Positions 15,332-54,342 of a DNA stretch of 64,000 nucleotides are shown in pieces (within the stretch, counting starts at the first letter, position 1; the number at the start of each line of letters is the position of its first letter). The notes beneath the pieces are model-generated. The model was not told where the DNA came from and did not search any database. It saw nothing but the letters and a program-made list of their open reading frames with translations. The translations under genes and the position numbers were made by a program. The DNA comes from Diadema antillarum (taxonomy: Eukaryota): NCBI RefSeq assembly GCF_040938485.1, contig NW_027271683.1:930001-994000 (forward strand), in the 5' to 3' direction.

Positions 15332-16445
15332 ATGTTGTTCTTCGATTTCTGTGAAATATTCAATCTTACAAGCGTGCTTGATGAAACTTCCGGAGACAAA
15401 GTATTCACTGCTGTTACATACATTCAACTCGGGGTCTCGAACCTGCTGAACCTGCTTCTATTGATTGCTCTGCGGACTCCTCTGGCTAACTTTGACGAGA
15501 TATCCCATCGATTCTTTCGTGTGCTTGCTGTACTGAATTGGATGTACAGTGCGTACTGTATCATCGTCCGAATCTGTGCAACGATGTTACAAAATCCACT
15601 CATTCTCCTTGAGATGCTTGTTGTGGACATTTCCTTCATAATGGCAACTCAACTCCTGGCACTGTTAATCAACCTAAATCGGTACATCATGATAACTCTA
15701 CCATTGCGATACAGTTCTCTGGTTAACAGTCGCCGAGCCAACTTTACTATTGTGGGGATTATCCTGCTCTCATTGATGTCTGTTGTTGCTGCTCCCTTCC
15801 CGCATTCACCTTCTAAAAGAATCCTCTCCGCGTTCATCGAATGTAAGTTTGATTCTATCGGATATCTTTTGGGAACGGTGAAGGTCATACTTTGTATAGG
15901 AGTAGTACTGTGTGCGGGAATAATTATATTAATAACCAGTTTGAACTTGAACATTTCTCATTGCAAGACGTCTTCAAAGGCAGGTGTTCAACAAGCCACC
16001 AGTGGTTCTGAACCCAGCCGGGATAACGGAGAATCATAATCTGCAGAACCAGAAATCGTCTAATGAAAATCCAGAAGTACAGGAGGGAAAGAATATCCTC
16101 GTTACGCCGCGGCGTCTGCGCTCGAATTCAGCGCACGGTAGGAAACCACCAGCTCGCGAGATGAAGAAATCGATCAAGGCAACGATCACGATGGCTCTCA
16201 TCACAGGTTCTTTCTACCTTTACTGGATCCCTCAGATTGTGAACCTAACATGGGTTCCGTTGGTTAGGCTTAGGCTTTCGATGTGGTGGGCGTACTTTGC
16301 GGGTAGTCTACTTTACAACAGCTTGTGGCTGAATGTTCTCGTCCTTAGAAAGACCGATAAGCATCTAAAGTCCACAGTTAGGAATCTACTAGGACGCTTA
16401 GATCTGAGGCAATGCTGGAATATATTTGCCGGTGTCTTTGTTTAA
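15332..16445 (+). pseudogene. GPCR3: 7TM receptor paralog with a 2-nt deletion frameshift at the end of TM5
   Basis: Span is 1114 nt versus 1116 in intact paralogs. At about 15951-15960, AACATTTCTCATT replaces the CAC-ACC-TTT-CTC-ATT-type sequence. ORFs 15332-16039 and 15984-16445 carry the two halves in different frames. Confidence 0.85.
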
Positions 16446-16451
16446 ATGTAA

Positions 16452-16463
16452 ATATATATATAA

Positions 16464-16514
<51 letters not shown>
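16452..16514. repeat. (TA)n microsatellite immediately after the GPCR3 stop codon
   Basis: About 60 nt of near-perfect TA repeats. Confidence 0.95.
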
Positions 16515-21260: not shown

Positions 21261-22376
21261 ATGTCGATTTCAGATTTATGTGAGATAGTCAATATCACCA
21301 GCGTGCTTGATCAGTCTCTAACGGACAGAGTATTTTCCACCATTACGTACATTCAACTCGGGCTCTCGAACGTATTGAACCTGTTTCTGTTGATCGCTCT
21401 GCAGACTCCTCTGGCTAACTTTGACGAGATATCCCATCGGTTCTTGCGAGTGCTTGCTGTACTGAATGGGCTGTACAGTGCGTATTGTCTTATTGTTCGA
21501 ATTTGTGCAACGATTTTACAAAATCCGAATATTCTGATTCAGACGCTTTTCGTAGACATTTCGTTCGTGATGTCAACTCAAAGCCTGACATTGCTAATCA
21601 ACCTAAATAGGTACGTCATGATAACACGGCCTCTGCGATACAATACTCTGGTTAACTCTCGCCGAGCCAACATTGCCATTGTGGGAGTTATCTTGTTCTC
21701 ATTGCTGTCTCTTTCCGCTGCTCCCTTCCCCGATTCATTCTACGAAATCCTCCTTCTTGCATTCATCAAGTGTGACAATGATTCTCTTGAAAATATTTTC
21801 GAAACGTTGCAGGTTATAGTTTGGATCGCAGTGCTAGCATGTGCGGGAATAATTATATTTATGACCGGTATAAACGTGCATACCTTACTGATTGCAAGGC
21901 GTCTTCATAGAAAGGTGTTCATCCAGCCACCATCGGTCATCGATCCATCTGTGAAGAAAGAAAATCATAATCTGCAGAACCAACAATTGTCTCACAAGAA
22001 TCCGCAAACCCATGTAGGAAAGAAAATTTCCAATAAATCAAGTCGTATATGCCCGAAAATCATAAACGGTGAGGAACCGCCTGTTCGCGAGGTGAAAAAG
22101 TCGTTCAAGGCAACTATCACGGTGACTCTTATAACAGGTTCTTTGTACCTGTACTGGATCCCCGAGATTGTGAGTATATCATGGGTTTCACTGATCGGGA
22201 TTTCGCCCCCGATGTGGTACACGTACCTGTCAGCGAGTCTTATTTACAGCAGTTTGTGGTTGAATGTGATCATCCTAATTCTGACCGATAAATATCTTAA
22301 GAGAACAATCGGAAATCTTCTTGGACGCTTAGATGTGACACAATGCTGGAATCCCTTTTTCGGTGTCTTTGTTTGA
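21261..22376 (+). CDS. GPCR4: intact intronless class A 7TM receptor, 371 aa
   Basis: Open 371-aa ORF with FVDISF...INLNRYVMITRPLRY, LYLYWIPE and YSSLWLNVIIL; colinear with the paralogs. Confidence 0.93.
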   Translation: MSISDLCEIVNITSVLDQSLTDRVFSTITYIQLGLSNVLNLFLLIALQTPLANFDEISHRFLRVLAVLNGLYSAYCLIVRICATILQNPNILIQTLFVDISFVMSTQSLTLLINLNRYVMITRPLRYNTLVNSRRANIAIVGVILFSLLSLSAAPFPDSFYEILLLAFIKCDNDSLENIFETLQVIVWIAVLACAGIIIFMTGINVHTLLIARRLHRKVFIQPPSVIDPSVKKENHNLQNQQLSHKNPQTHVGKKISNKSSRICPKIINGEEPPVREVKKSFKATITVTLITGSLYLYWIPEIVSISWVSLIGISPPMWYTYLSASLIYSSLWLNVIILILTDKYLKRTIGNLLGRLDVTQCWNPFFGVFV

Positions 22377-29824: not shown

Positions 29825-30931
29825 ATGTCGAATTCAAACTTCTGTGAGATAGTCAATGTCACAAGCGTTCTTGATGAAGCTCTTGGAGACATAGCATTTT
29901 CTGCCGTTACGTACATTCAACTCGGGGTCTCGAACCTGTTGAACCTGTTCTTGTTGATTGCTCTGCGAACTCCTCTGGAAAGCTTTGACGAGATATCCCA
30001 TCGGTTCTTTCGAGTGATTGCTGTTTTGAATTGGCTGTACAGTGCGTACAGTCTCGTCATTCGTACTTATGCAACGATTTCACAACAATCGCTCATTCTG
30101 ATTCAGGCGCTTTTCGTAGACATTTCGTTCGTGATGTCAACTCAAAGCCTTACATTACTGATCAATCTTAATAGATATATCATGATAACGCGACCTCTAC
30201 GATACAGTACTCTGGTTAACGCTCGCCGAGCCAACGTTGCAATTTTGGGAATTATCCTGTTCTCAATGCTGTCTCTTGCCGCTGCTCCCTTCCCCGATTC
30301 GCCCTACGAAAGAATACTGTCTGCATTCATTCAGTGTGACAATGATTCTCTCGGACATTTTTTTGAAACGTTGCAGGTCATCGTTTGGATAGCGGTGATA
30401 TCATCTGTGGGATTGATTATATTCGTAACAGGTATAAACATGCACACCTTAATAATTGCAAGGCGTCTTCATAGGCAGGTTTTCATGCAGCCACCAGTAG
30501 TTGCCGACCCATTAGGAGTCACAAAGAACCATAATCAGAAAGATAAGAAATTGTCGCATGAAAACCGGCAAACCCCGGTAGAAAAGAAAATCATGAATTC
30601 GCGCCATGACAAGTCAACAAACGATCTGGACCGGCCTGCCCGCGAGCCGAAAAAGTCGTTCAAGGCAGCTATCACAGTGGCGCTCGTAACAGGTTCTTTC
30701 TACCTGTATTGGATCCCGCAGCTTGTGAGTGTATCGTGGGTTCCATTGATGGGGCTGTCACCTCCGTTGTGGTGGACTTACATATCAGCGAGTCTTATTT
30801 ACAGCAGTTTGTGGTTGAATGTGATCATCTTAATAGTGACCGATAAGCATCTCAAGAGGAGAACCGGGATTCTCATCGGACGCATAGATATGAAGCAATG
30901 CCGGAATCCCTTCTTCGGTGTCTTTGTATAA
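29825..30931 (+). CDS. GPCR5: intact intronless class A 7TM receptor, 368 aa
   Basis: Open ORF. ATG 29825 (MSNSNFC) was chosen because it puts Cys at position 7 as in the paralogs. ICL3 is 3 aa shorter. Confidence 0.92.
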   Translation: MSNSNFCEIVNVTSVLDEALGDIAFSAVTYIQLGVSNLLNLFLLIALRTPLESFDEISHRFFRVIAVLNWLYSAYSLVIRTYATISQQSLILIQALFVDISFVMSTQSLTLLINLNRYIMITRPLRYSTLVNARRANVAILGIILFSMLSLAAAPFPDSPYERILSAFIQCDNDSLGHFFETLQVIVWIAVISSVGLIIFVTGINMHTLIIARRLHRQVFMQPPVVADPLGVTKNHNQKDKKLSHENRQTPVEKKIMNSRHDKSTNDLDRPAREPKKSFKAAITVALVTGSFYLYWIPQLVSVSWVPLMGLSPPLWWTYISASLIYSSLWLNVIILIVTDKHLKRRTGILIGRIDMKQCRNPFFGVFV

Positions 30932-34670: not shown

Positions 34671-35209
34671 ATATTGCTTTTCTTTCAATGATCCTACTTG
34701 ATTGATCTTCCACTGTACATCGGATGATGTCTTCGCAGTTTCCCAGCACCCGACTTTTGGCGTTGATGCCACGGAACGGATATACGAATTCGAACAATTG
34801 CCCACGTATCGAAAAGTAGCCTAATTAGTAACTTGGTTTTAGCATCGGTTTTTGTTTCTGTCTTACAGCAGCAAAAAAACAAAAGATAGAAAGAAAAGAA
34901 AAGACGTTTGTCAAGAAAAATCTGATACTTGGAGAGGGCAAGACAGACAATCTCAATAGTAATAGGAGAATAACTTACAAGAGCTTCAATGCACGTTTCT
35001 GTTTCCATAGTAAATCTATCCGGCTAAGTACGTGTATCCATTCTGCCTTCGCCGGACACAAGTCGGAAAGGAACCAATAATCAATTTTACACTAATACGT
35101 TCAATATCATTCTTTGTGTCTGTGCATATTAGAGTGCTATTCGACACGATTCGAGGAGACAAACTGGCTGTTTTTCCCCTGTAATTGATATCGAAAGGTG
35201 GAGCATAAA

Positions 35210-36355
35210 ATGTCGACTTTAGATTTTTGTGCGATGATCAATCTCACAAGCGTGCTCGATCAATCTCTCGGAGAAAATGTATTTTCTGCTATCACTTACA
35301 TTCAACTCGGGGTCGCGAACGTATTGAACATGTTTCTGTTGATCGCTCTCCAGACTCCTCTGGCTAACTTTGACGAGGTATCTCATCGGTTCTTTCGAGT
35401 GCTTGCTGGAGTAAATTGGCTGTACAGTGCGTATTGTCTTATCGTCCGTATCTGTGCAACGATTTTACAAAATCCGCTCATTCAGATTAAGATGGTTTTC
35501 GTAGACGTTTCCTTCATAATGGCAACTCAACTCTTGGCACTGCTAATCAACCTAAACAGGTACATCATGATAACCCGACCTTTGCGATACAGTACTGTTG
35601 TTAACACTCGCCGAGCCAACATTGCACTTGTGGGGATTTTCTTGTTCTCACTAGTATCTCTTTGCAATGCGCCCTTTCCGCGTTCACCTCTCGAAAAAAT
35701 ACTTTCAGCATTCATTGACTGTGACAATGATTCTCTTGAACATCTTTTTGAAATTTTCCATGTCATAGCTTGGATCGCAGTAGTAGTATGTGGAGGAATT
35801 ATTGTATCAATAACCAGCATGAATGGGCACACCTTACTCATTGCAATGCGTCTTCATAGGCAAGTGTTCACCCAGCCACCAGCGGTCCCGGACCCATCGG
35901 GTATTAAAGAAAATCATAATCTTAAAAACCAGAAATTGTCGCATGAAAAACAAGGGACTTCTGAAGCTCCTTGCGAAAACCCACAAACTCATGCGGAAGA
36001 GAAAATCTTCAACAGAAATCGTCGTCTGCGCTTGAAGTCAGCCAACGGTAGGGAACCACCAGCTCGCGAGCTGAGGAAATCGATCAAGGCAACGATCACT
36101 GTGGCTCTCATCACAGGTTCTTTCTACCTGTAATACTGGATCCCTCAGATTGTACATATAACTTGGGTTCCGTTGGTCAGGCTTCCGCCTCCAATGTGGT
36201 GGATGTACTTGGTGGTCAGTCTGGTTTACAGCAGCTTGTGGTTGAACGTTGTCATCCTCATAAAGACAGATAACAATCTTCAGAGGACAGTGAAGAATCT
36301 ACTCGCACGCGTAGATTTTAAAAAGTGCTTGAATCCATTCTTCAGTGTCTTGTGA
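35210..36355 (+). pseudogene. GPCR6: 7TM receptor paralog with an inserted in-frame TAA in TM6
   Basis: CTG TAA TAC TGG at 36128-36139 versus CTG TAC TGG in the paralogs. The frame is intact on both sides (ORFs 35198-36133 and 36173-36355 share a frame). ICL3 has a 10-aa insertion. Confidence 0.88.
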
Positions 36356-38064: not shown

Positions 38065-41000
38065 ATGGCCTCTAAGAGGATTGAGTCTATTATCCTCTTC
38101 TGCCTTCTTTTGTGTGCACTGGCCTGTGAAGGCAATGGAAATCCCTGGGCAGTACCTGTGTTAGCTAACTTGTACACCACCTACAAGGGCTATGTTGGGC
38201 AAGCTGAGTATTTATATACTACCAAGTACTCTGGACCACCAGTACCATATCATTCGAATTCTTCAGCGAATTTTCGCCCATCTCTTGTGACCTGTGGTGA
38301 CGTAAGCCCCAACCCGGGACCTTCACGTGCATCTCACATACATCAGCATGACCAGCAGGCTGTGCCTCAGTGGCAAGATAAAACTAATGTATGTTATCAT
38401 AGACCCAGACTCTCCCTCGCGGGTCAAGCTGCAGTTCGTCTTCATACTCAGAAGCTCGACCGTGAGGTATGGAATCGAATCCACCAACTGGGCATTGCTC
38501 GCCGACGGAAAACCCAAAGGGTAGAAGAAGGAACAGACCAGATGAGAGAATCAGCGGTATACCGAAAACTGGGGGATGCCGTGCAGAAGTTCACAAATCC
38601 TGCCACATCGCCACTCGTGTCTCCTACCGCCCTGAACCAAGTATGCTACCGGTTCAACGGAGTGTAAGCCACCATAATCTCGTTCAAATCATCAGAGAGG
38701 TCAAGCCATTCCATGTGAGTTATAATTTCCCACGCTTTTTTATGAGCAATATGAGATCCCTTGTTAACAAGTTTGATGAACTAGAGCTGTTCCTCCGAGA
38801 TAAAGACATTGATTTGTGCGCTGTGACTGAATCTTGGCTGACCTTAGATACTGTTGACTACTTCTCAGTCCATGGATACTCGCATTTCTCAAAATGTCGG
38901 ACTAGTCGAAGAGGAGGAGGGGTGTCCTTGTTCATAAGACACGAGCTTAATCCTTCTCCTGTTACGGACATCGCTGTGCCCAACGACCTTGAAATCGCCT
39001 GGGGGCATATTCGCCCCCGGCGCCTCCCTCGCAAAATCTCGAGCGTATACATCGCAGCTTTATACTCACCCCCAAATAGTGGTACTGAAGAACAGATGAT
39101 CGATCATGTCGTTCAGTCAATCGATGACCTGCGATTGAGACAGCCATCTAGTGGCCGGCTGGTTGTGCTGGGTGACTTTAATCGGCTAGATACAGATGTC
39201 ATTTGTGCCAATTGCTCTCTTCGACAGGTAGTGGACAAACCCACAAGATATGGCTCAATCCTGGATAAGATCTTAACAAACCTCGGGGACTTTTACAAAC
39301 AAGTTGCCATACTTTCCCCCCTCGGAAAAAGTGACCACAATGTGGTAACCTGGTTTCCCAAGGAAGTATTTCCCCGTGAGCCCAATGTCTTGACTAGGCG
39401 TGTCTTGAGACCCATCCGTGACTCTGACGCAAGATGTTTTGGTAGGTGGATCTCAAATCAGTCCTGGTCTAGTGTTCATGATGCCCAGATACCCAGACTA
39501 AATGTGATGAGTTCTACTCCACCCTTCACCAAGAACTGAACACATTCTTCCCTCAGAAGGAGGTATAACGAGTCCACAACAGAGACAAACCATGGATCAC
39601 CCCTGAAGTGAAATCGCTGATAAGTAAACGACAACATCTTTTTGTGAACGGCCCCATAAATGCTTGGAAAGCCTGCCGCAATAAAATCTGTAGGAGCATT
39701 CGCCGAGCGAAGAAAGAATTCTATCATGATCGTGTTGCCAAATTGAAGAATGATGATCCTGCGTCATGGTACAAAAACATTAAGCTCATGACGTCACGTA
39801 GCCAGTTAAACGAGATAATCCATGTTCCGGATGTTGATAAGTCGAAAGCAGACGTTGTCGCTGAAACCATCAATTCGCACTTCATAAGCATCTCAAGTGG
39901 TATCGCACCCCTTGAAATGTCCAAACTCCCACCGTTGACGTCTGATACCCCACCTCTTCCAAGACTTGAACAATGGGAAGTGATGCGAGAGTTGTAAAAA
40001 GTGAGTCCAGGGAAGTCTTGTGGACCTGATGGAATACCGGCGAGAGTGATAAGGATGTTTTCACTTGAATTAAGCTCCCCGTTACGTCACATTCTGAACA
40101 GTTCCTATACTGAACGTGTTGTGCCACATCAGTGGAAGCAAGCAATAGTAGTTCCTGTCCCGAAAGAGAAACCAGCCAAAATCGATAAGCTTAGACCAAT
40201 AGCACTTACAGATCATTTTGCAAAACTTGCTGAGTTGTTTATCACTAAGTGGTTGGTGTTTGCCATTGATCCCTCCCTTGACAGTAAACAATTTGGTAGT
40301 AGAGCTGGTATGTCATGTACGCACTGCTTAGTGGATATTGTCAACTTTTTATCCAAAAAAGCCGACAAGCTAGGTACTACGTCCGTGGTAGTTACAACAG
40401 ATTTCTCCAAAGATTTTGATAGAGTAGACCACTCAATAATCATGTCAAAGTTGGTTGAATTACAAGTCCATCCTTCTCTCATGTCTTGGATTGCCAACTT
40501 CCTCACTGACCGATCCCAGCGTGTTCGCTACCGTGGTTGTCTGTCCTCAAGTCGATCTCTCTATGCGGGAGTACCACAAGGAACACGTTTAGGCCCAGTG
40601 TTATTGCTGATTCTCATTAACGGCGCCTTGATGCCATCCAGTATTGAACATTGGAAATATGTAGACGACATGACGATAGCGGAAGCAACACAACTAGGAT
40701 CGGTCGGTGAAATGCAAGGTACCCTTCAGAAATTAGACAGATGGTGCACTACAAATAACATGCAACTGAATGCTTCTAAATGTCATGTAATGAGGGTTGA
40801 TTTTGGTAAAACCCAGTTGCCTTCTACACAATGTAGTCTAAATGGCCAGACTTTGGCTGAAGTGGATGTGGTAAAAATCCTAGGTGTTGGTGCAGTCTAA
40901 CCTCAAGTGGGACAGCTACGTGAGTGCCATGCTGTCAAAGGTTAGTAAGAGATTGTTCATGTTAAGATCATTGAAATCTTTTAAACTTCCAATGAAAGAT

Positions 41001-43845: not shown

Positions 43846-44350
43846 AGGCCTAATTACAGCTTCATATAATACTGCTTTCTTTTTTATGATCCTATTTGAG
43901 TGATATTTCACAACGGACATGACTTGTCAGCTTCCCAGAACCCATTTGACGCCTCCAAACACATAATACGTGCGCATCTGGAGAATCGGGTATAGCCTTA
44001 TACGTGCTGACAAAGATTCGTCACAGACGTTGTAACTTTGAAACTTGTTGTAAACTAAAAACAAAAGGCGTCGTTCAGTAGAGATCTAACGCTTGCAGAA
44101 GAATACATTGAAGTATTTCTCAGTTGCTTGCATGCTCTTCATTACACATCGCGGTATCCGCTGTCATGCTACCCATCTTCTTACGTGTATTCGTTCTAGC
44201 CTTACAGAGATCACATTGAACTTCGACGAATGATCGATAGTGTATCATCAGTATCACTCAAAGTAACGCCCTGCGAAAACTGTTTATTAATGTTGACGTT
44301 GTTGTTGTTGTTGTTTTCCCTGAAGTTAACCTCGGAAGGTGGTGTACATA

Positions 44351-45469
44351 ATGTCGACTTCAGATCTCTTTGAGATGTTCAATGGCACAAACATACTTGA
44401 TCAATACTTTGATAATAAAGTATTTTCTACCATTAATTACATTCAACTTGGGGTATCGAACATACTGAACCTGTTTCTGTTGATCGCTCTGCGGACTCCT
44501 CTGGCTAACTTTGACGAAATATCCCATCGGTTTTTTCGAGTGCTTGCTGTCTTGAACTGGCTGTACAGTACGTATTGTTTTATCGTCCGTATCTGTGCAA
44601 CGGCTTTACAAAATCCGAATATTCTGATTCAGACGCTTTTCATAGACATTTCGTTCGCAATGGCAAGTCAAAGCCTGACATTACTAATCAATTTAAATAG
44701 GTACATCATGATAACACGACCTCTGCGATACAATGCTCTGGTTAATACTCGCCGTGCGAACTTTGTCATTGTTGGGGAGATCTTGTTCTCATTGCTGTTT
44801 CTTTCATTTGCTCCCTTCCCACATTCACCCTTCAAAAGAATCCTTTCCGCATTTATCGAGAGGGATTTTGATTTTCTTGGACATTTTCTCGAAACGTTGG
44901 AGATCATTCTGTCGATCGAACTGGTAATATGTGTTGTTACAATCATATTCATAACCACCACAAACGTGCATATCTTCTTCATTGCAAGGCGTCTCCAGAG
45001 GCAGATGATCAACCAGCCACCGGCAATCCTGGACCCATTGAGGGTTACAGACAACCATATTCAGGACGATCACAAATCGTTGCCTGGAAAACAACATAAA
45101 CATCACGTGGTAAAGAAAGTCTCCAAAACGCTGTGTTTTTTTCGCTCGAAGCCAACAAGTGGTCCCAAACATCCAGCTCGTACATTGACGAGGCCAGTGA
45201 AGGCAACGATCACGGTGGCTCTAATCACAGGTTCGTTCTACCTGTACTGGGTTCCTCAGGTCGTGAACCTAATATGGCTTCTGCGGGTCAGGCTCCCGCC
45301 TCCAACATGGTGGACGTACTTGGTTGGAAGTTTGATGTATGGCAGCTTATGGTGGAATGTAGTCATCCTCATACTGACGGATAAGCATCTTAAGAGAACA
45401 GTTGGGAATCTTCTTGGACGCATCAATTTGAAACAGTGCTGGAATCCATTCTTTGGTGTCTCTGTTTGA
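44351..45469 (+). CDS. GPCR7: intact intronless class A 7TM receptor, 372 aa (lacks both Cys7 and the ECL2 Cys)
   Basis: Open ORF from ATG 44351 (MSTSDLF), with FIDISF...INLNRY, FYLYWVP and YGSLWWNVVIL. Confidence 0.92.
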   Translation: MSTSDLFEMFNGTNILDQYFDNKVFSTINYIQLGVSNILNLFLLIALRTPLANFDEISHRFFRVLAVLNWLYSTYCFIVRICATALQNPNILIQTLFIDISFAMASQSLTLLINLNRYIMITRPLRYNALVNTRRANFVIVGEILFSLLFLSFAPFPHSPFKRILSAFIERDFDFLGHFLETLEIILSIELVICVVTIIFITTTNVHIFFIARRLQRQMINQPPAILDPLRVTDNHIQDDHKSLPGKQHKHHVVKKVSKTLCFFRSKPTSGPKHPARTLTRPVKATITVALITGSFYLYWVPQVVNLIWLLRVRLPPPTWWTYLVGSLMYGSLWWNVVILILTDKHLKRTVGNLLGRINLKQCWNPFFGVSV

Positions 45470-53241: not shown

Positions 53242-54342
53242 ATGACGACGGCAGATTTCTGTGAGGTGATTAATAACACCATTGCGTTTTATCAATCTAG
53301 TGCAGACAATGCATTTTCTATCATTAATTACATTCAACTTGGTGTCTCGAACGTATTGAACATGTTTCTGTTGATTGCTCTGCAGACTCCTCTGGCTAAC
53401 TTTGACGAGATATCTCATCGGTTCTTTCGAGTGCTTGCTGGAGTAAATTGGCTGTACAGTACGTATTGTTTTATCGTTCGTATTTTGGCAATGACTTTAC
53501 ACAAACCCTTCATTCTGTTCCAAATGATTTTCGTGGACATTTCGTTCATAATATCAACTCAAAGCCTAACATTGCTAATTAACCTAAATCGGTACATCAT
53601 GATAACTCGACCTCTGCGATACTCTACTCTGATAAACACTTGCCGAGCCAACACTGCCATTGTAGGAATTTTCTTGTTCTCACTGTTGTCTCTTTCCTTT
53701 GCTCCTTTTCCGAATTCACCTTTCGAAAAAACAATTTACGCATTCATTGAGTGCGATTTGAATACTCTTGGTATTTTTTTCGAAATCTTGGAGGTTATTC
53801 TTTTGATCGTACTGGTAGCATGTGCAGCAACAATTATATTCATAACCGGCACAAATTTGCACATCTTCTTAATTGCACGGCGTCTCCATAGGCAGGTGGT
53901 CAACCAGCCGCCGGCGGTCCTGGACCCGTTAGGGGTCACAGACACCCACATTATCGACCATCAATACCCACACACCCAGATGGTAAAGAAAATCTCCAAA
54001 AGGCTAGGTCGTCTGCGCTCGAAGTCAACAAAAGGCAAACAGCGGCCAGCTCGTACATTGACGAAGTCGGTGAAGGCAACGATCACGGTGGCTCTCATCA
54101 CAGGTTCGCTCTACCTGTACTGGGTCCCACAGGTTGTGAACATAACATGGTTTCTGCGGGTCAGGCTTCCGCTTCCTAAGTGGTGGACGTCCTTGGTGGA
54201 AAGTTTACCGTTCTTCAGCTTGTGGTGGAATGTTGTCGTCCTCATACTGACGGACAAACATCTTAAGAGGACAATCAGTAATCTAATCCGACGCATCGAT
54301 CTCAAGCAATGCTGGAGTCCACACTTTGGTGTCTATGTTTGA
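53242..54342 (+). CDS. GPCR8: intact intronless class A 7TM receptor, 366 aa
   Basis: Open ORF from ATG 53242 (MTTADFC) with a shorter ICL3; all family motifs are present. Confidence 0.92.
   Translation: MTTADFCEVINNTIAFYQSSADNAFSIINYIQLGVSNVLNMFLLIALQTPLANFDEISHRFFRVLAGVNWLYSTYCFIVRILAMTLHKPFILFQMIFVDISFIISTQSLTLLINLNRYIMITRPLRYSTLINTCRANTAIVGIFLFSLLSLSFAPFPNSPFEKTIYAFIECDLNTLGIFFEILEVILLIVLVACAATIIFITGTNLHIFLIARRLHRQVVNQPPAVLDPLGVTDTHIIDHQYPHTQMVKKISKRLGRLRSKSTKGKQRPARTLTKSVKATITVALITGSLYLYWVPQVVNITWFLRVRLPLPKWWTSLVESLPFFSLWWNVVVLILTDKHLKRTISNLIRRIDLKQCWSPHFGVYV

Follow-up and report, generated by a model that had tools for sequence, protein, structure and literature searches.

In the GnRH receptor (GnRHR), a C14-C200 disulfide connects the N-terminus to ECL2. 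N-terminal disulfides are frequent among class A receptors: a 2026 survey predicted them in 86 of 146 human non-olfactory receptors that have an N-terminal Cys (PMC13486327). Of the predicted bonds, 14 reach ECL2, and in 13 receptors without a canonical Cys the N-terminal bond may act as a cap (PMC13486327). In LPAR1 (LPA1; PDB 4Z34), the N-terminal Cys is bonded to ECL2 (PMC13486327) and the TM3-ECL2 bond is absent (PMC8779880). The olfactory receptor OR51E2 depends on a C4-ECL2 bond for its surface expression (PMC13486327). Besides the canonical bond, HCAR2 has C18-C183 (PMC10682194), and TAARs are listed among the receptors with extra N-terminal disulfides (PMC13486327).

A preliminary description of the locus studied here, an array of receptor genes in the sea urchin Diadema antillarum, had proposed a bond between the N-terminus and ECL2 with GnRHR as precedent. 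GnRHR turns out to be the weaker analogue since it keeps C3.25, the canonical C114-C196 bond of GnRH1R being intact (PMC7576152); LPA1 and OR51E2 are closer. HCAR2, TAARs and GnRHR all have a disulfide running from the N-terminus to ECL2 or to the top of TM5, but this bond is additional to an intact C3.25-C45.50 bond and does not replace it. LPA1 resembles the urchin family more fully. It is a class A receptor without a C3.25-ECL2 bond in which an N-terminal Cys reaches ECL2, the corresponding urchin bond being a probable one. The N-terminus of LPA1 packs over the extracellular face. The AlphaFold2 model of the urchin receptor GPCR4 also draws an N-terminal helix, with low confidence. In contrast, the N-terminus of LPA1 is longer, LPA1 has further intra-loop disulfides, no specific sequence kinship with the urchin family is detectable, and the urchin Cys is located merely 4-7 residues from the start, beside a glycosylation sequon. 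OR51E2 and other ORs with an N-terminal Cys share with the urchin family a short N-terminus with a Cys at about residue 4 and, as is probable for the urchin receptors, a partner in ECL2 and the compensation of a missing conserved bond. They are also chemoreceptor-type genes, intronless and expanded in tandem. However, ORs keep C3.25-C45.50 and their N-terminal Cys replaces the 45.40-45.60 intra-loop bond, whereas the urchin family lacks the canonical TM3 partner. Because LPA1 and OR51E2 have comparable bonds, the mechanism is less novel than first implied. By analogy with them, the probable N-terminus-ECL2 tie of the urchin family is to be seen as a further example of a known alternative disulfide, not as a new principle.

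As genes, the urchin receptors recall the sea urchin surreal-GPCRs (cited in PMC7042368), which are lineage-specific class A expansions of chemosensory type; in both cases, intronless class A genes form tandem clusters in an echinoid genome. On the Diadema side, the genes evolve fast (dN/dS about 0.4), pseudogenes are frequent and there are no close homologs outside urchins. We found no paper describing the Cys pattern in the published surreal-GPCR groups A-F.

The window, that is the whole stretch of 64,000 nucleotides analysed here (C795:930001-994000, contig NW_027271683.1), contains eight same-strand tandem ORFs of about 370 codons each. These genes, GPCR1 to GPCR8, are all on the + strand and without introns, and encode divergent class A GPCRs. 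GPCR2 (9076..10191; Cys7 9094-9096, Cys171 9586-9588), GPCR4 (21261..22376; Cys7 21279-21281, Cys171 21771-21773), GPCR5 (29825..30931; Cys7 29843-29845, Cys171 30335-30337), GPCR7 (44351..45469; 372 codons, both Cys absent) and GPCR8 (53242..54342; Cys7 53260-53262, Cys171 53752-53754) are intact. GPCR4 serves as the reference, GPCR8 is the sister of GPCR7, and neither GPCR5 nor GPCR8 has Cys82, found at the top of TM2 in others. The three remaining genes are broken in the C795 haplotype. GPCR1 consists of a 5' piece (1625..2101; Cys7 TGT 1643-1645), in which the family sequence is lost after '...LINL' at an insertion, and a 3' piece (4138..5043) that runs from the NRY motif onward and contains the ECL2 Cys (TGT 4438-4440). 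GPCR3 (15332..16039; Cys7 15350-15352, Cys171 15842-15844) is truncated, with several stops downstream. GPCR6 (35210..36133; Cys7 35228-35230, Cys171 35720-35722) has a premature TAA.

Within GPCR1 (window 1472-5043), the insertion measures about 2.2 kb and is located at the NRY motif; broken GPCR3 spans 15332-16500 and broken GPCR6 spans 35198-36352. The counterparts of these three genes on the colinear contig C1967 (L010, L012 and L006, respectively) are full-length intact ORFs. Functional receptor genes seem to be subject to presence/absence polymorphism between C795 and C1967. Between GPCR6 and GPCR7 (38065-40900) lies a non-LTR retrotransposon, whose ORFs match an Exo_endo_phos endonuclease and an RVT_1 reverse transcriptase.

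Pfam 7tm_1 (PF00001) is detected in GPCR4, GPCR7 and GPCR8 with 38.6-44.2 bits, against a curated cut-off of 30.5. The canonical microswitches D2.50, DRY, CWxP and NPxxY are replaced throughout the family; the alignment shows N at 2.50, NRY for DRY, YWIP for CWxP and N-V-x-x-L for NPxxY. Pro is absent at 5.50, and an Asp or Glu is conserved at 3.32 by gapless count. Despite the replaced microswitches, the family is a divergent member of class A and not a non-member. AlphaFold2 predicts a confident helix bundle for GPCR7 and a seven-helix bundle for GPCR4 (pTM 0.71), with A2A, beta1, alpha1A and MC4R as Foldseek neighbours (probability 1.00). These neighbours are generic class A receptors and reveal no specific link to LPA1. 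By sequence profile, the best solved relatives are A2A and GPR21. Residues 1-20 are predicted with low confidence in GPCR4 and GPCR7 (pLDDT <50), except residue 7 of GPCR4, where pLDDT is at least 50. This bump at the single residue Cys7 may be taken as a weak hint.

The Cys pattern reported for the eight window genes was confirmed, every quoted letter being checked. Codon 7 is TGT in seven of the eight and TTT (44369-44371) in GPCR7. In ECL2, the same seven genes have TGT or TGC as codon 171, where GPCR7 has AGG (44861-44863). As also reported, position 3.25 is not a Cys in any of the eight. It is a Leu, but a Gln in GPCR6, and the region 3.21-3.29 is free of Cys. Position 3.25 was placed by a gapless count of 25 residues from the Arg in the NRY motif towards the N-terminus; a HMMER alignment to A2A moves the register by three residues and still leaves no Cys in the 3.25 region. 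GPCR4 has six Cys in total (7, 76, 82, 171, 194 and 362), none of which is in TM3. Cys171 is found 26 residues before the 5.50-equivalent, that is roughly at 45.50, the exact equivalence not being established.

Residue numbering in GPCR7 is sound because an in-frame TAA (44327-44329) makes the ATG at 44351 the true start. Upstream of this ATG, the region 44296-44329 contains a (GTT)n run and a polypyrimidine tract ending in AG, with the TAA directly next, 22 bases 5' of the ATG. This arrangement resembles a splice acceptor at the end of an intron in the 5' UTR. Both GPCR7 codons are upheld by the contigs of four public runs, which come from four studies and bear two species labels.

Six-frame searches of the 1.75 Gb assembly returned the same closed set of paralogs each time, with a clear score gap to other GPCRs. 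The genome contains 38 intact ORFs of the family in three subgroups, with identities going down to 35%. Group A is made of the main array of 14 loci and a smaller cluster, group B shares about 37% identity with group A, and group C has one locus only. As contig C1967 is colinear with C795, many loci occur twice. An aligned N-terminal Cys is present in 34 of the 38 intact paralogs, and two others (L034 and L035) have an N-terminal Cys elsewhere. The latter carry two N-terminal Cys each, at non-aligned positions, and their Cys pairing could differ from that of the rest of the family. As for the ECL2 Cys, 35 of the 38 have it. No paralog has a Cys at 3.25 (0/38), and a TM3 Cys occurs only in L007 and L013, deeper, at 3.30. 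The N-terminal Cys is residue 7, or residue 4 in one subgroup, and lies inside a near-invariant C-x3-N-x-[S/T] glycosylation motif. Together with the ECL2 Cys, it forms the sole near-invariant extracellular Cys set over a family tree whose length is about 8 substitutions per site. Every pseudogene fragment that reaches these sites still has the Cys.

Joint presence or absence of the two Cys was followed across these 38 paralogs. Both copies of GPCR7 lack both residues, and the count of co-loss events is still one, in the GPCR7 clade, as in the window. The co-variation, described as perfect on the basis of the window, holds for its eight genes (8/8) but not genome-wide, since one form, L024, combines Cys7 with Gly171. 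L024 (C1967:118713-119834) is the counterpart of L023 (C795:904962-906083) and has an intact ORF. Its codon 171 is GGT, and this is its sole departure from the 53 columns considered below. Thus, Cys7 without Cys171 exists in at least one assembled haplotype. L023 and L024 differ at 37 residues, four of these differences involving Cys: from L023 to L024, Tyr30 becomes Cys (TM1), Cys76 becomes Gly, a Cys at the end of TM4 becomes Phe and Cys171 becomes Gly. Their dS, 0.14, is high for alleles.

The nearest relatives outside the family show the complementary pattern. Outgroup L049, from the same genome, has C3.25 and the ECL2 Cys and no N-terminal Cys. The urchin proteins P0003 and P0004, GPR52/GPR21-like by name, have the NRY motif and the ECL2 Cys in common with the family, whereas they keep C3.25 and lack the N-terminal Cys. 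They are the nearest named relatives, at a remote level of similarity (profile E-values 1e-24 to 1e-20). The motif MGEFDMCEMYNFS and the ECL2 Cys, but no C3.25, are found in a distant urchin subfamily represented by P0002 and P0156 (about 25-30% identity); in P0002-type proteins, the N-terminal Cys is followed by N-F-S. The best matches of P0002 in the Diadema genome are the present family. Thus, from the family to its outgroups, the N-terminal Cys and C3.25 exclude each other and the ECL2 Cys is constant, as a partner swap predicts.

The P0002 contig (L051) carries two copies, both frame-broken and both with the Cys pair. Further P0002 matches in this genome, on C1225 and C802, were dropped as broken genes of another type. 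P0001 (XP_011672223.1, Strongylocentrotus) is a close relative of P0002. It appears to be a chimeric gene model, in which the TM4-to-C-terminus half of a family-type GPCR, with a duplicated loop segment, follows about 150 N-terminal residues that are unrelated. Word-indexed searches of the protein collections found no family member besides the two P0002 copies, and an exhaustive profile comparison yielded no close homolog, its best hit having E = 4e-26, so that sampling across species is thin.

Two copies of GPCR7 are assembled. L018 has Phe7 and Arg171 (TTT, AGG) and L019 has Leu7 and Ser171 (CTT, AGT). Run X1 contains the two forms at comparable depth, its second contig having exactly the five differences expected of L019. 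L018 and L019 fit two haplotypes, a fixed duplication being the alternative. In the maximum-likelihood tree they group together in one clade with full support, and GPCR8 is its sister. Family comparison gives TGT as the ancestral codon 7 and TGT or TGC as the ancestral codon 171. The codons imply one ancestral loss per site, TGT to TTT and TGT to AGT, and then a second change at each site in one copy. Of 53 columns that are invariant in 24 other close paralogs, GPCR7 deviates at three, two of which are the Cys sites; the chance of hitting both Cys among the deviating columns is P ~0.002. The GPCR7 stem represents about 2% of the total tree length, which gives P ~0.04 for independent losses on the same branch. 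The GPCR7 copies differ at 27 of 372 residues, and sites 7 and 171 are both among these (naive P ~0.005).

Both GPCR7 copies have a Glu in the middle of TM4 (residue 143, 44777-44779, about 4.51) and another in TM5 (residue 190, about 44918-44920, about 5.43), at positions that are hydrophobic in all relatives; the labels 4.51 and 5.43 are a count from the alignment. GPCR7 also has a Ser in place of the adjoining Trp188. Taken with the loss of the Cys pair, the two Glu suggest a remodelled pocket in GPCR7.

The co-loss would say nothing about pairing if GPCR7 were decaying or functionless and had lost its Cys under relaxed selection. We judge this quite improbable. Pseudogenisation is admittedly frequent in the array, three of the eight window genes being already broken, and the Glu residues in TM4 and TM5 of GPCR7 are odd. 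No public run recorded as RNA contains GPCR7, and RNA evidence was found for no copy of the family. Against decay, the ORF runs unbroken over its full length in each of the two genome copies, and contigs under a second species label are free of frame-breaking changes in the approximately three quarters of the ORF that they cover. The dN/dS is 0.45 between the GPCR7 copies and 0.41 between GPCR7 and GPCR8, which is the family norm (0.3-0.57 for most other pairs). With changes at just three of the 53 invariant columns, this family-typical ratio indicates that GPCR7 is constrained, not decaying. Moreover, recent pseudogene fragments retain both Cys, so decay does not hit these codons first. Because its ORF is intact and under purifying selection, GPCR7 is probably a working receptor without the bridge. 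Cys7 and Cys171 might also be conserved for separate reasons, unbonded to each other, with the ECL2 Cys paired to Cys82 or free, the N-terminal Cys in some other role and the joint loss in GPCR7 a coincidence. This seems to us unlikely, even if the probability of coincidence on the tree is not negligible and L024 has Cys7 without Cys171. Apart from the two, Cys82 (about 2.63), located towards the extracellular end of TM2, is the only Cys close to the outer face; 30 of 39 aligned rows have it. As a general partner of the ECL2 Cys it was rejected: eight copies that lack it retain Cys7 and Cys171, and GPCR7 has it but has neither of the two. Conserved unpaired extracellular Cys are unusual in proteins of the secretory pathway, which also counts against separate conservation, as does the mutual exclusion of the N-terminal Cys and C3.25.

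Intermolecular bridges, in disulfide-linked dimers or to a secreted or accessory partner, would involve the same residues, both of which are exposed on the extracellular face, and sequence data cannot tell intra- from intermolecular pairing. However, a closed intramolecular pair is the simplest reading of two Cys, and no others, that are conserved together and lost together, and in the structures of LPAR1 and OR51E2 the same arrangement corresponds to intramolecular bonds (PMC13486327). Bridges between molecules are therefore, in our view, very improbable. It is rather likely, from the pattern of conservation, that a disulfide between the N-terminus and ECL2 (Cys7-Cys171) replaces the TM3 bond in this family.

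The data establish the Cys pattern with its conservation and its complementarity to C3.25, the co-loss and the continued constraint on GPCR7; we infer the bond itself, its putative function as a lid over the pocket and the activity of GPCR7. On this reading, with an intramolecular Cys7-Cys171 bond, the history is as follows. In an urchin-specific, intronless and chemoreceptor-like tandem expansion, the canonical Cys3.25 is absent, and the ECL2 Cys171 is most likely bonded instead to a Cys near the very N-terminus. The bond would tie a glycosylated tail of 22 residues across the extracellular face to ECL2, as in LPA1 and OR51E2. Both Cys were replaced in the ancestor of GPCR7, by the TGT to TTT and TGT to AGT changes. 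Once the bond was lost, neither site would have been constrained, and each was altered again in one of the two copies. The array could even display the 'life cycle' of a disulfide within one species, from a family-wide partner swap through a segregating single-Cys intermediate, L024, to a fixed, functional and bridge-free GPCR7. With Glu at 4.51 and 5.43, the latter would have a remodelled pocket, and another class of ligand could enter through its opened vestibule. We put this wider scenario forward as a possible, if doubtful, one.

The sequences have a value for annotation, as the Diadema members of the family are absent from the protein collections searched. The natural double-loss (GPCR7) and single-loss (L024) variants would be useful for studying what folding, surface delivery and ligand access need of the bridge. 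The recent finding that an N-terminal Cys can stand in for a conserved bond that is missing (PMC13486327) would be broadened from mammals to echinoderms. If the N-terminus-ECL2 bond is real, the most conserved disulfide of class A has been replaced, throughout an invertebrate receptor family, by a fixed N-terminal tether.
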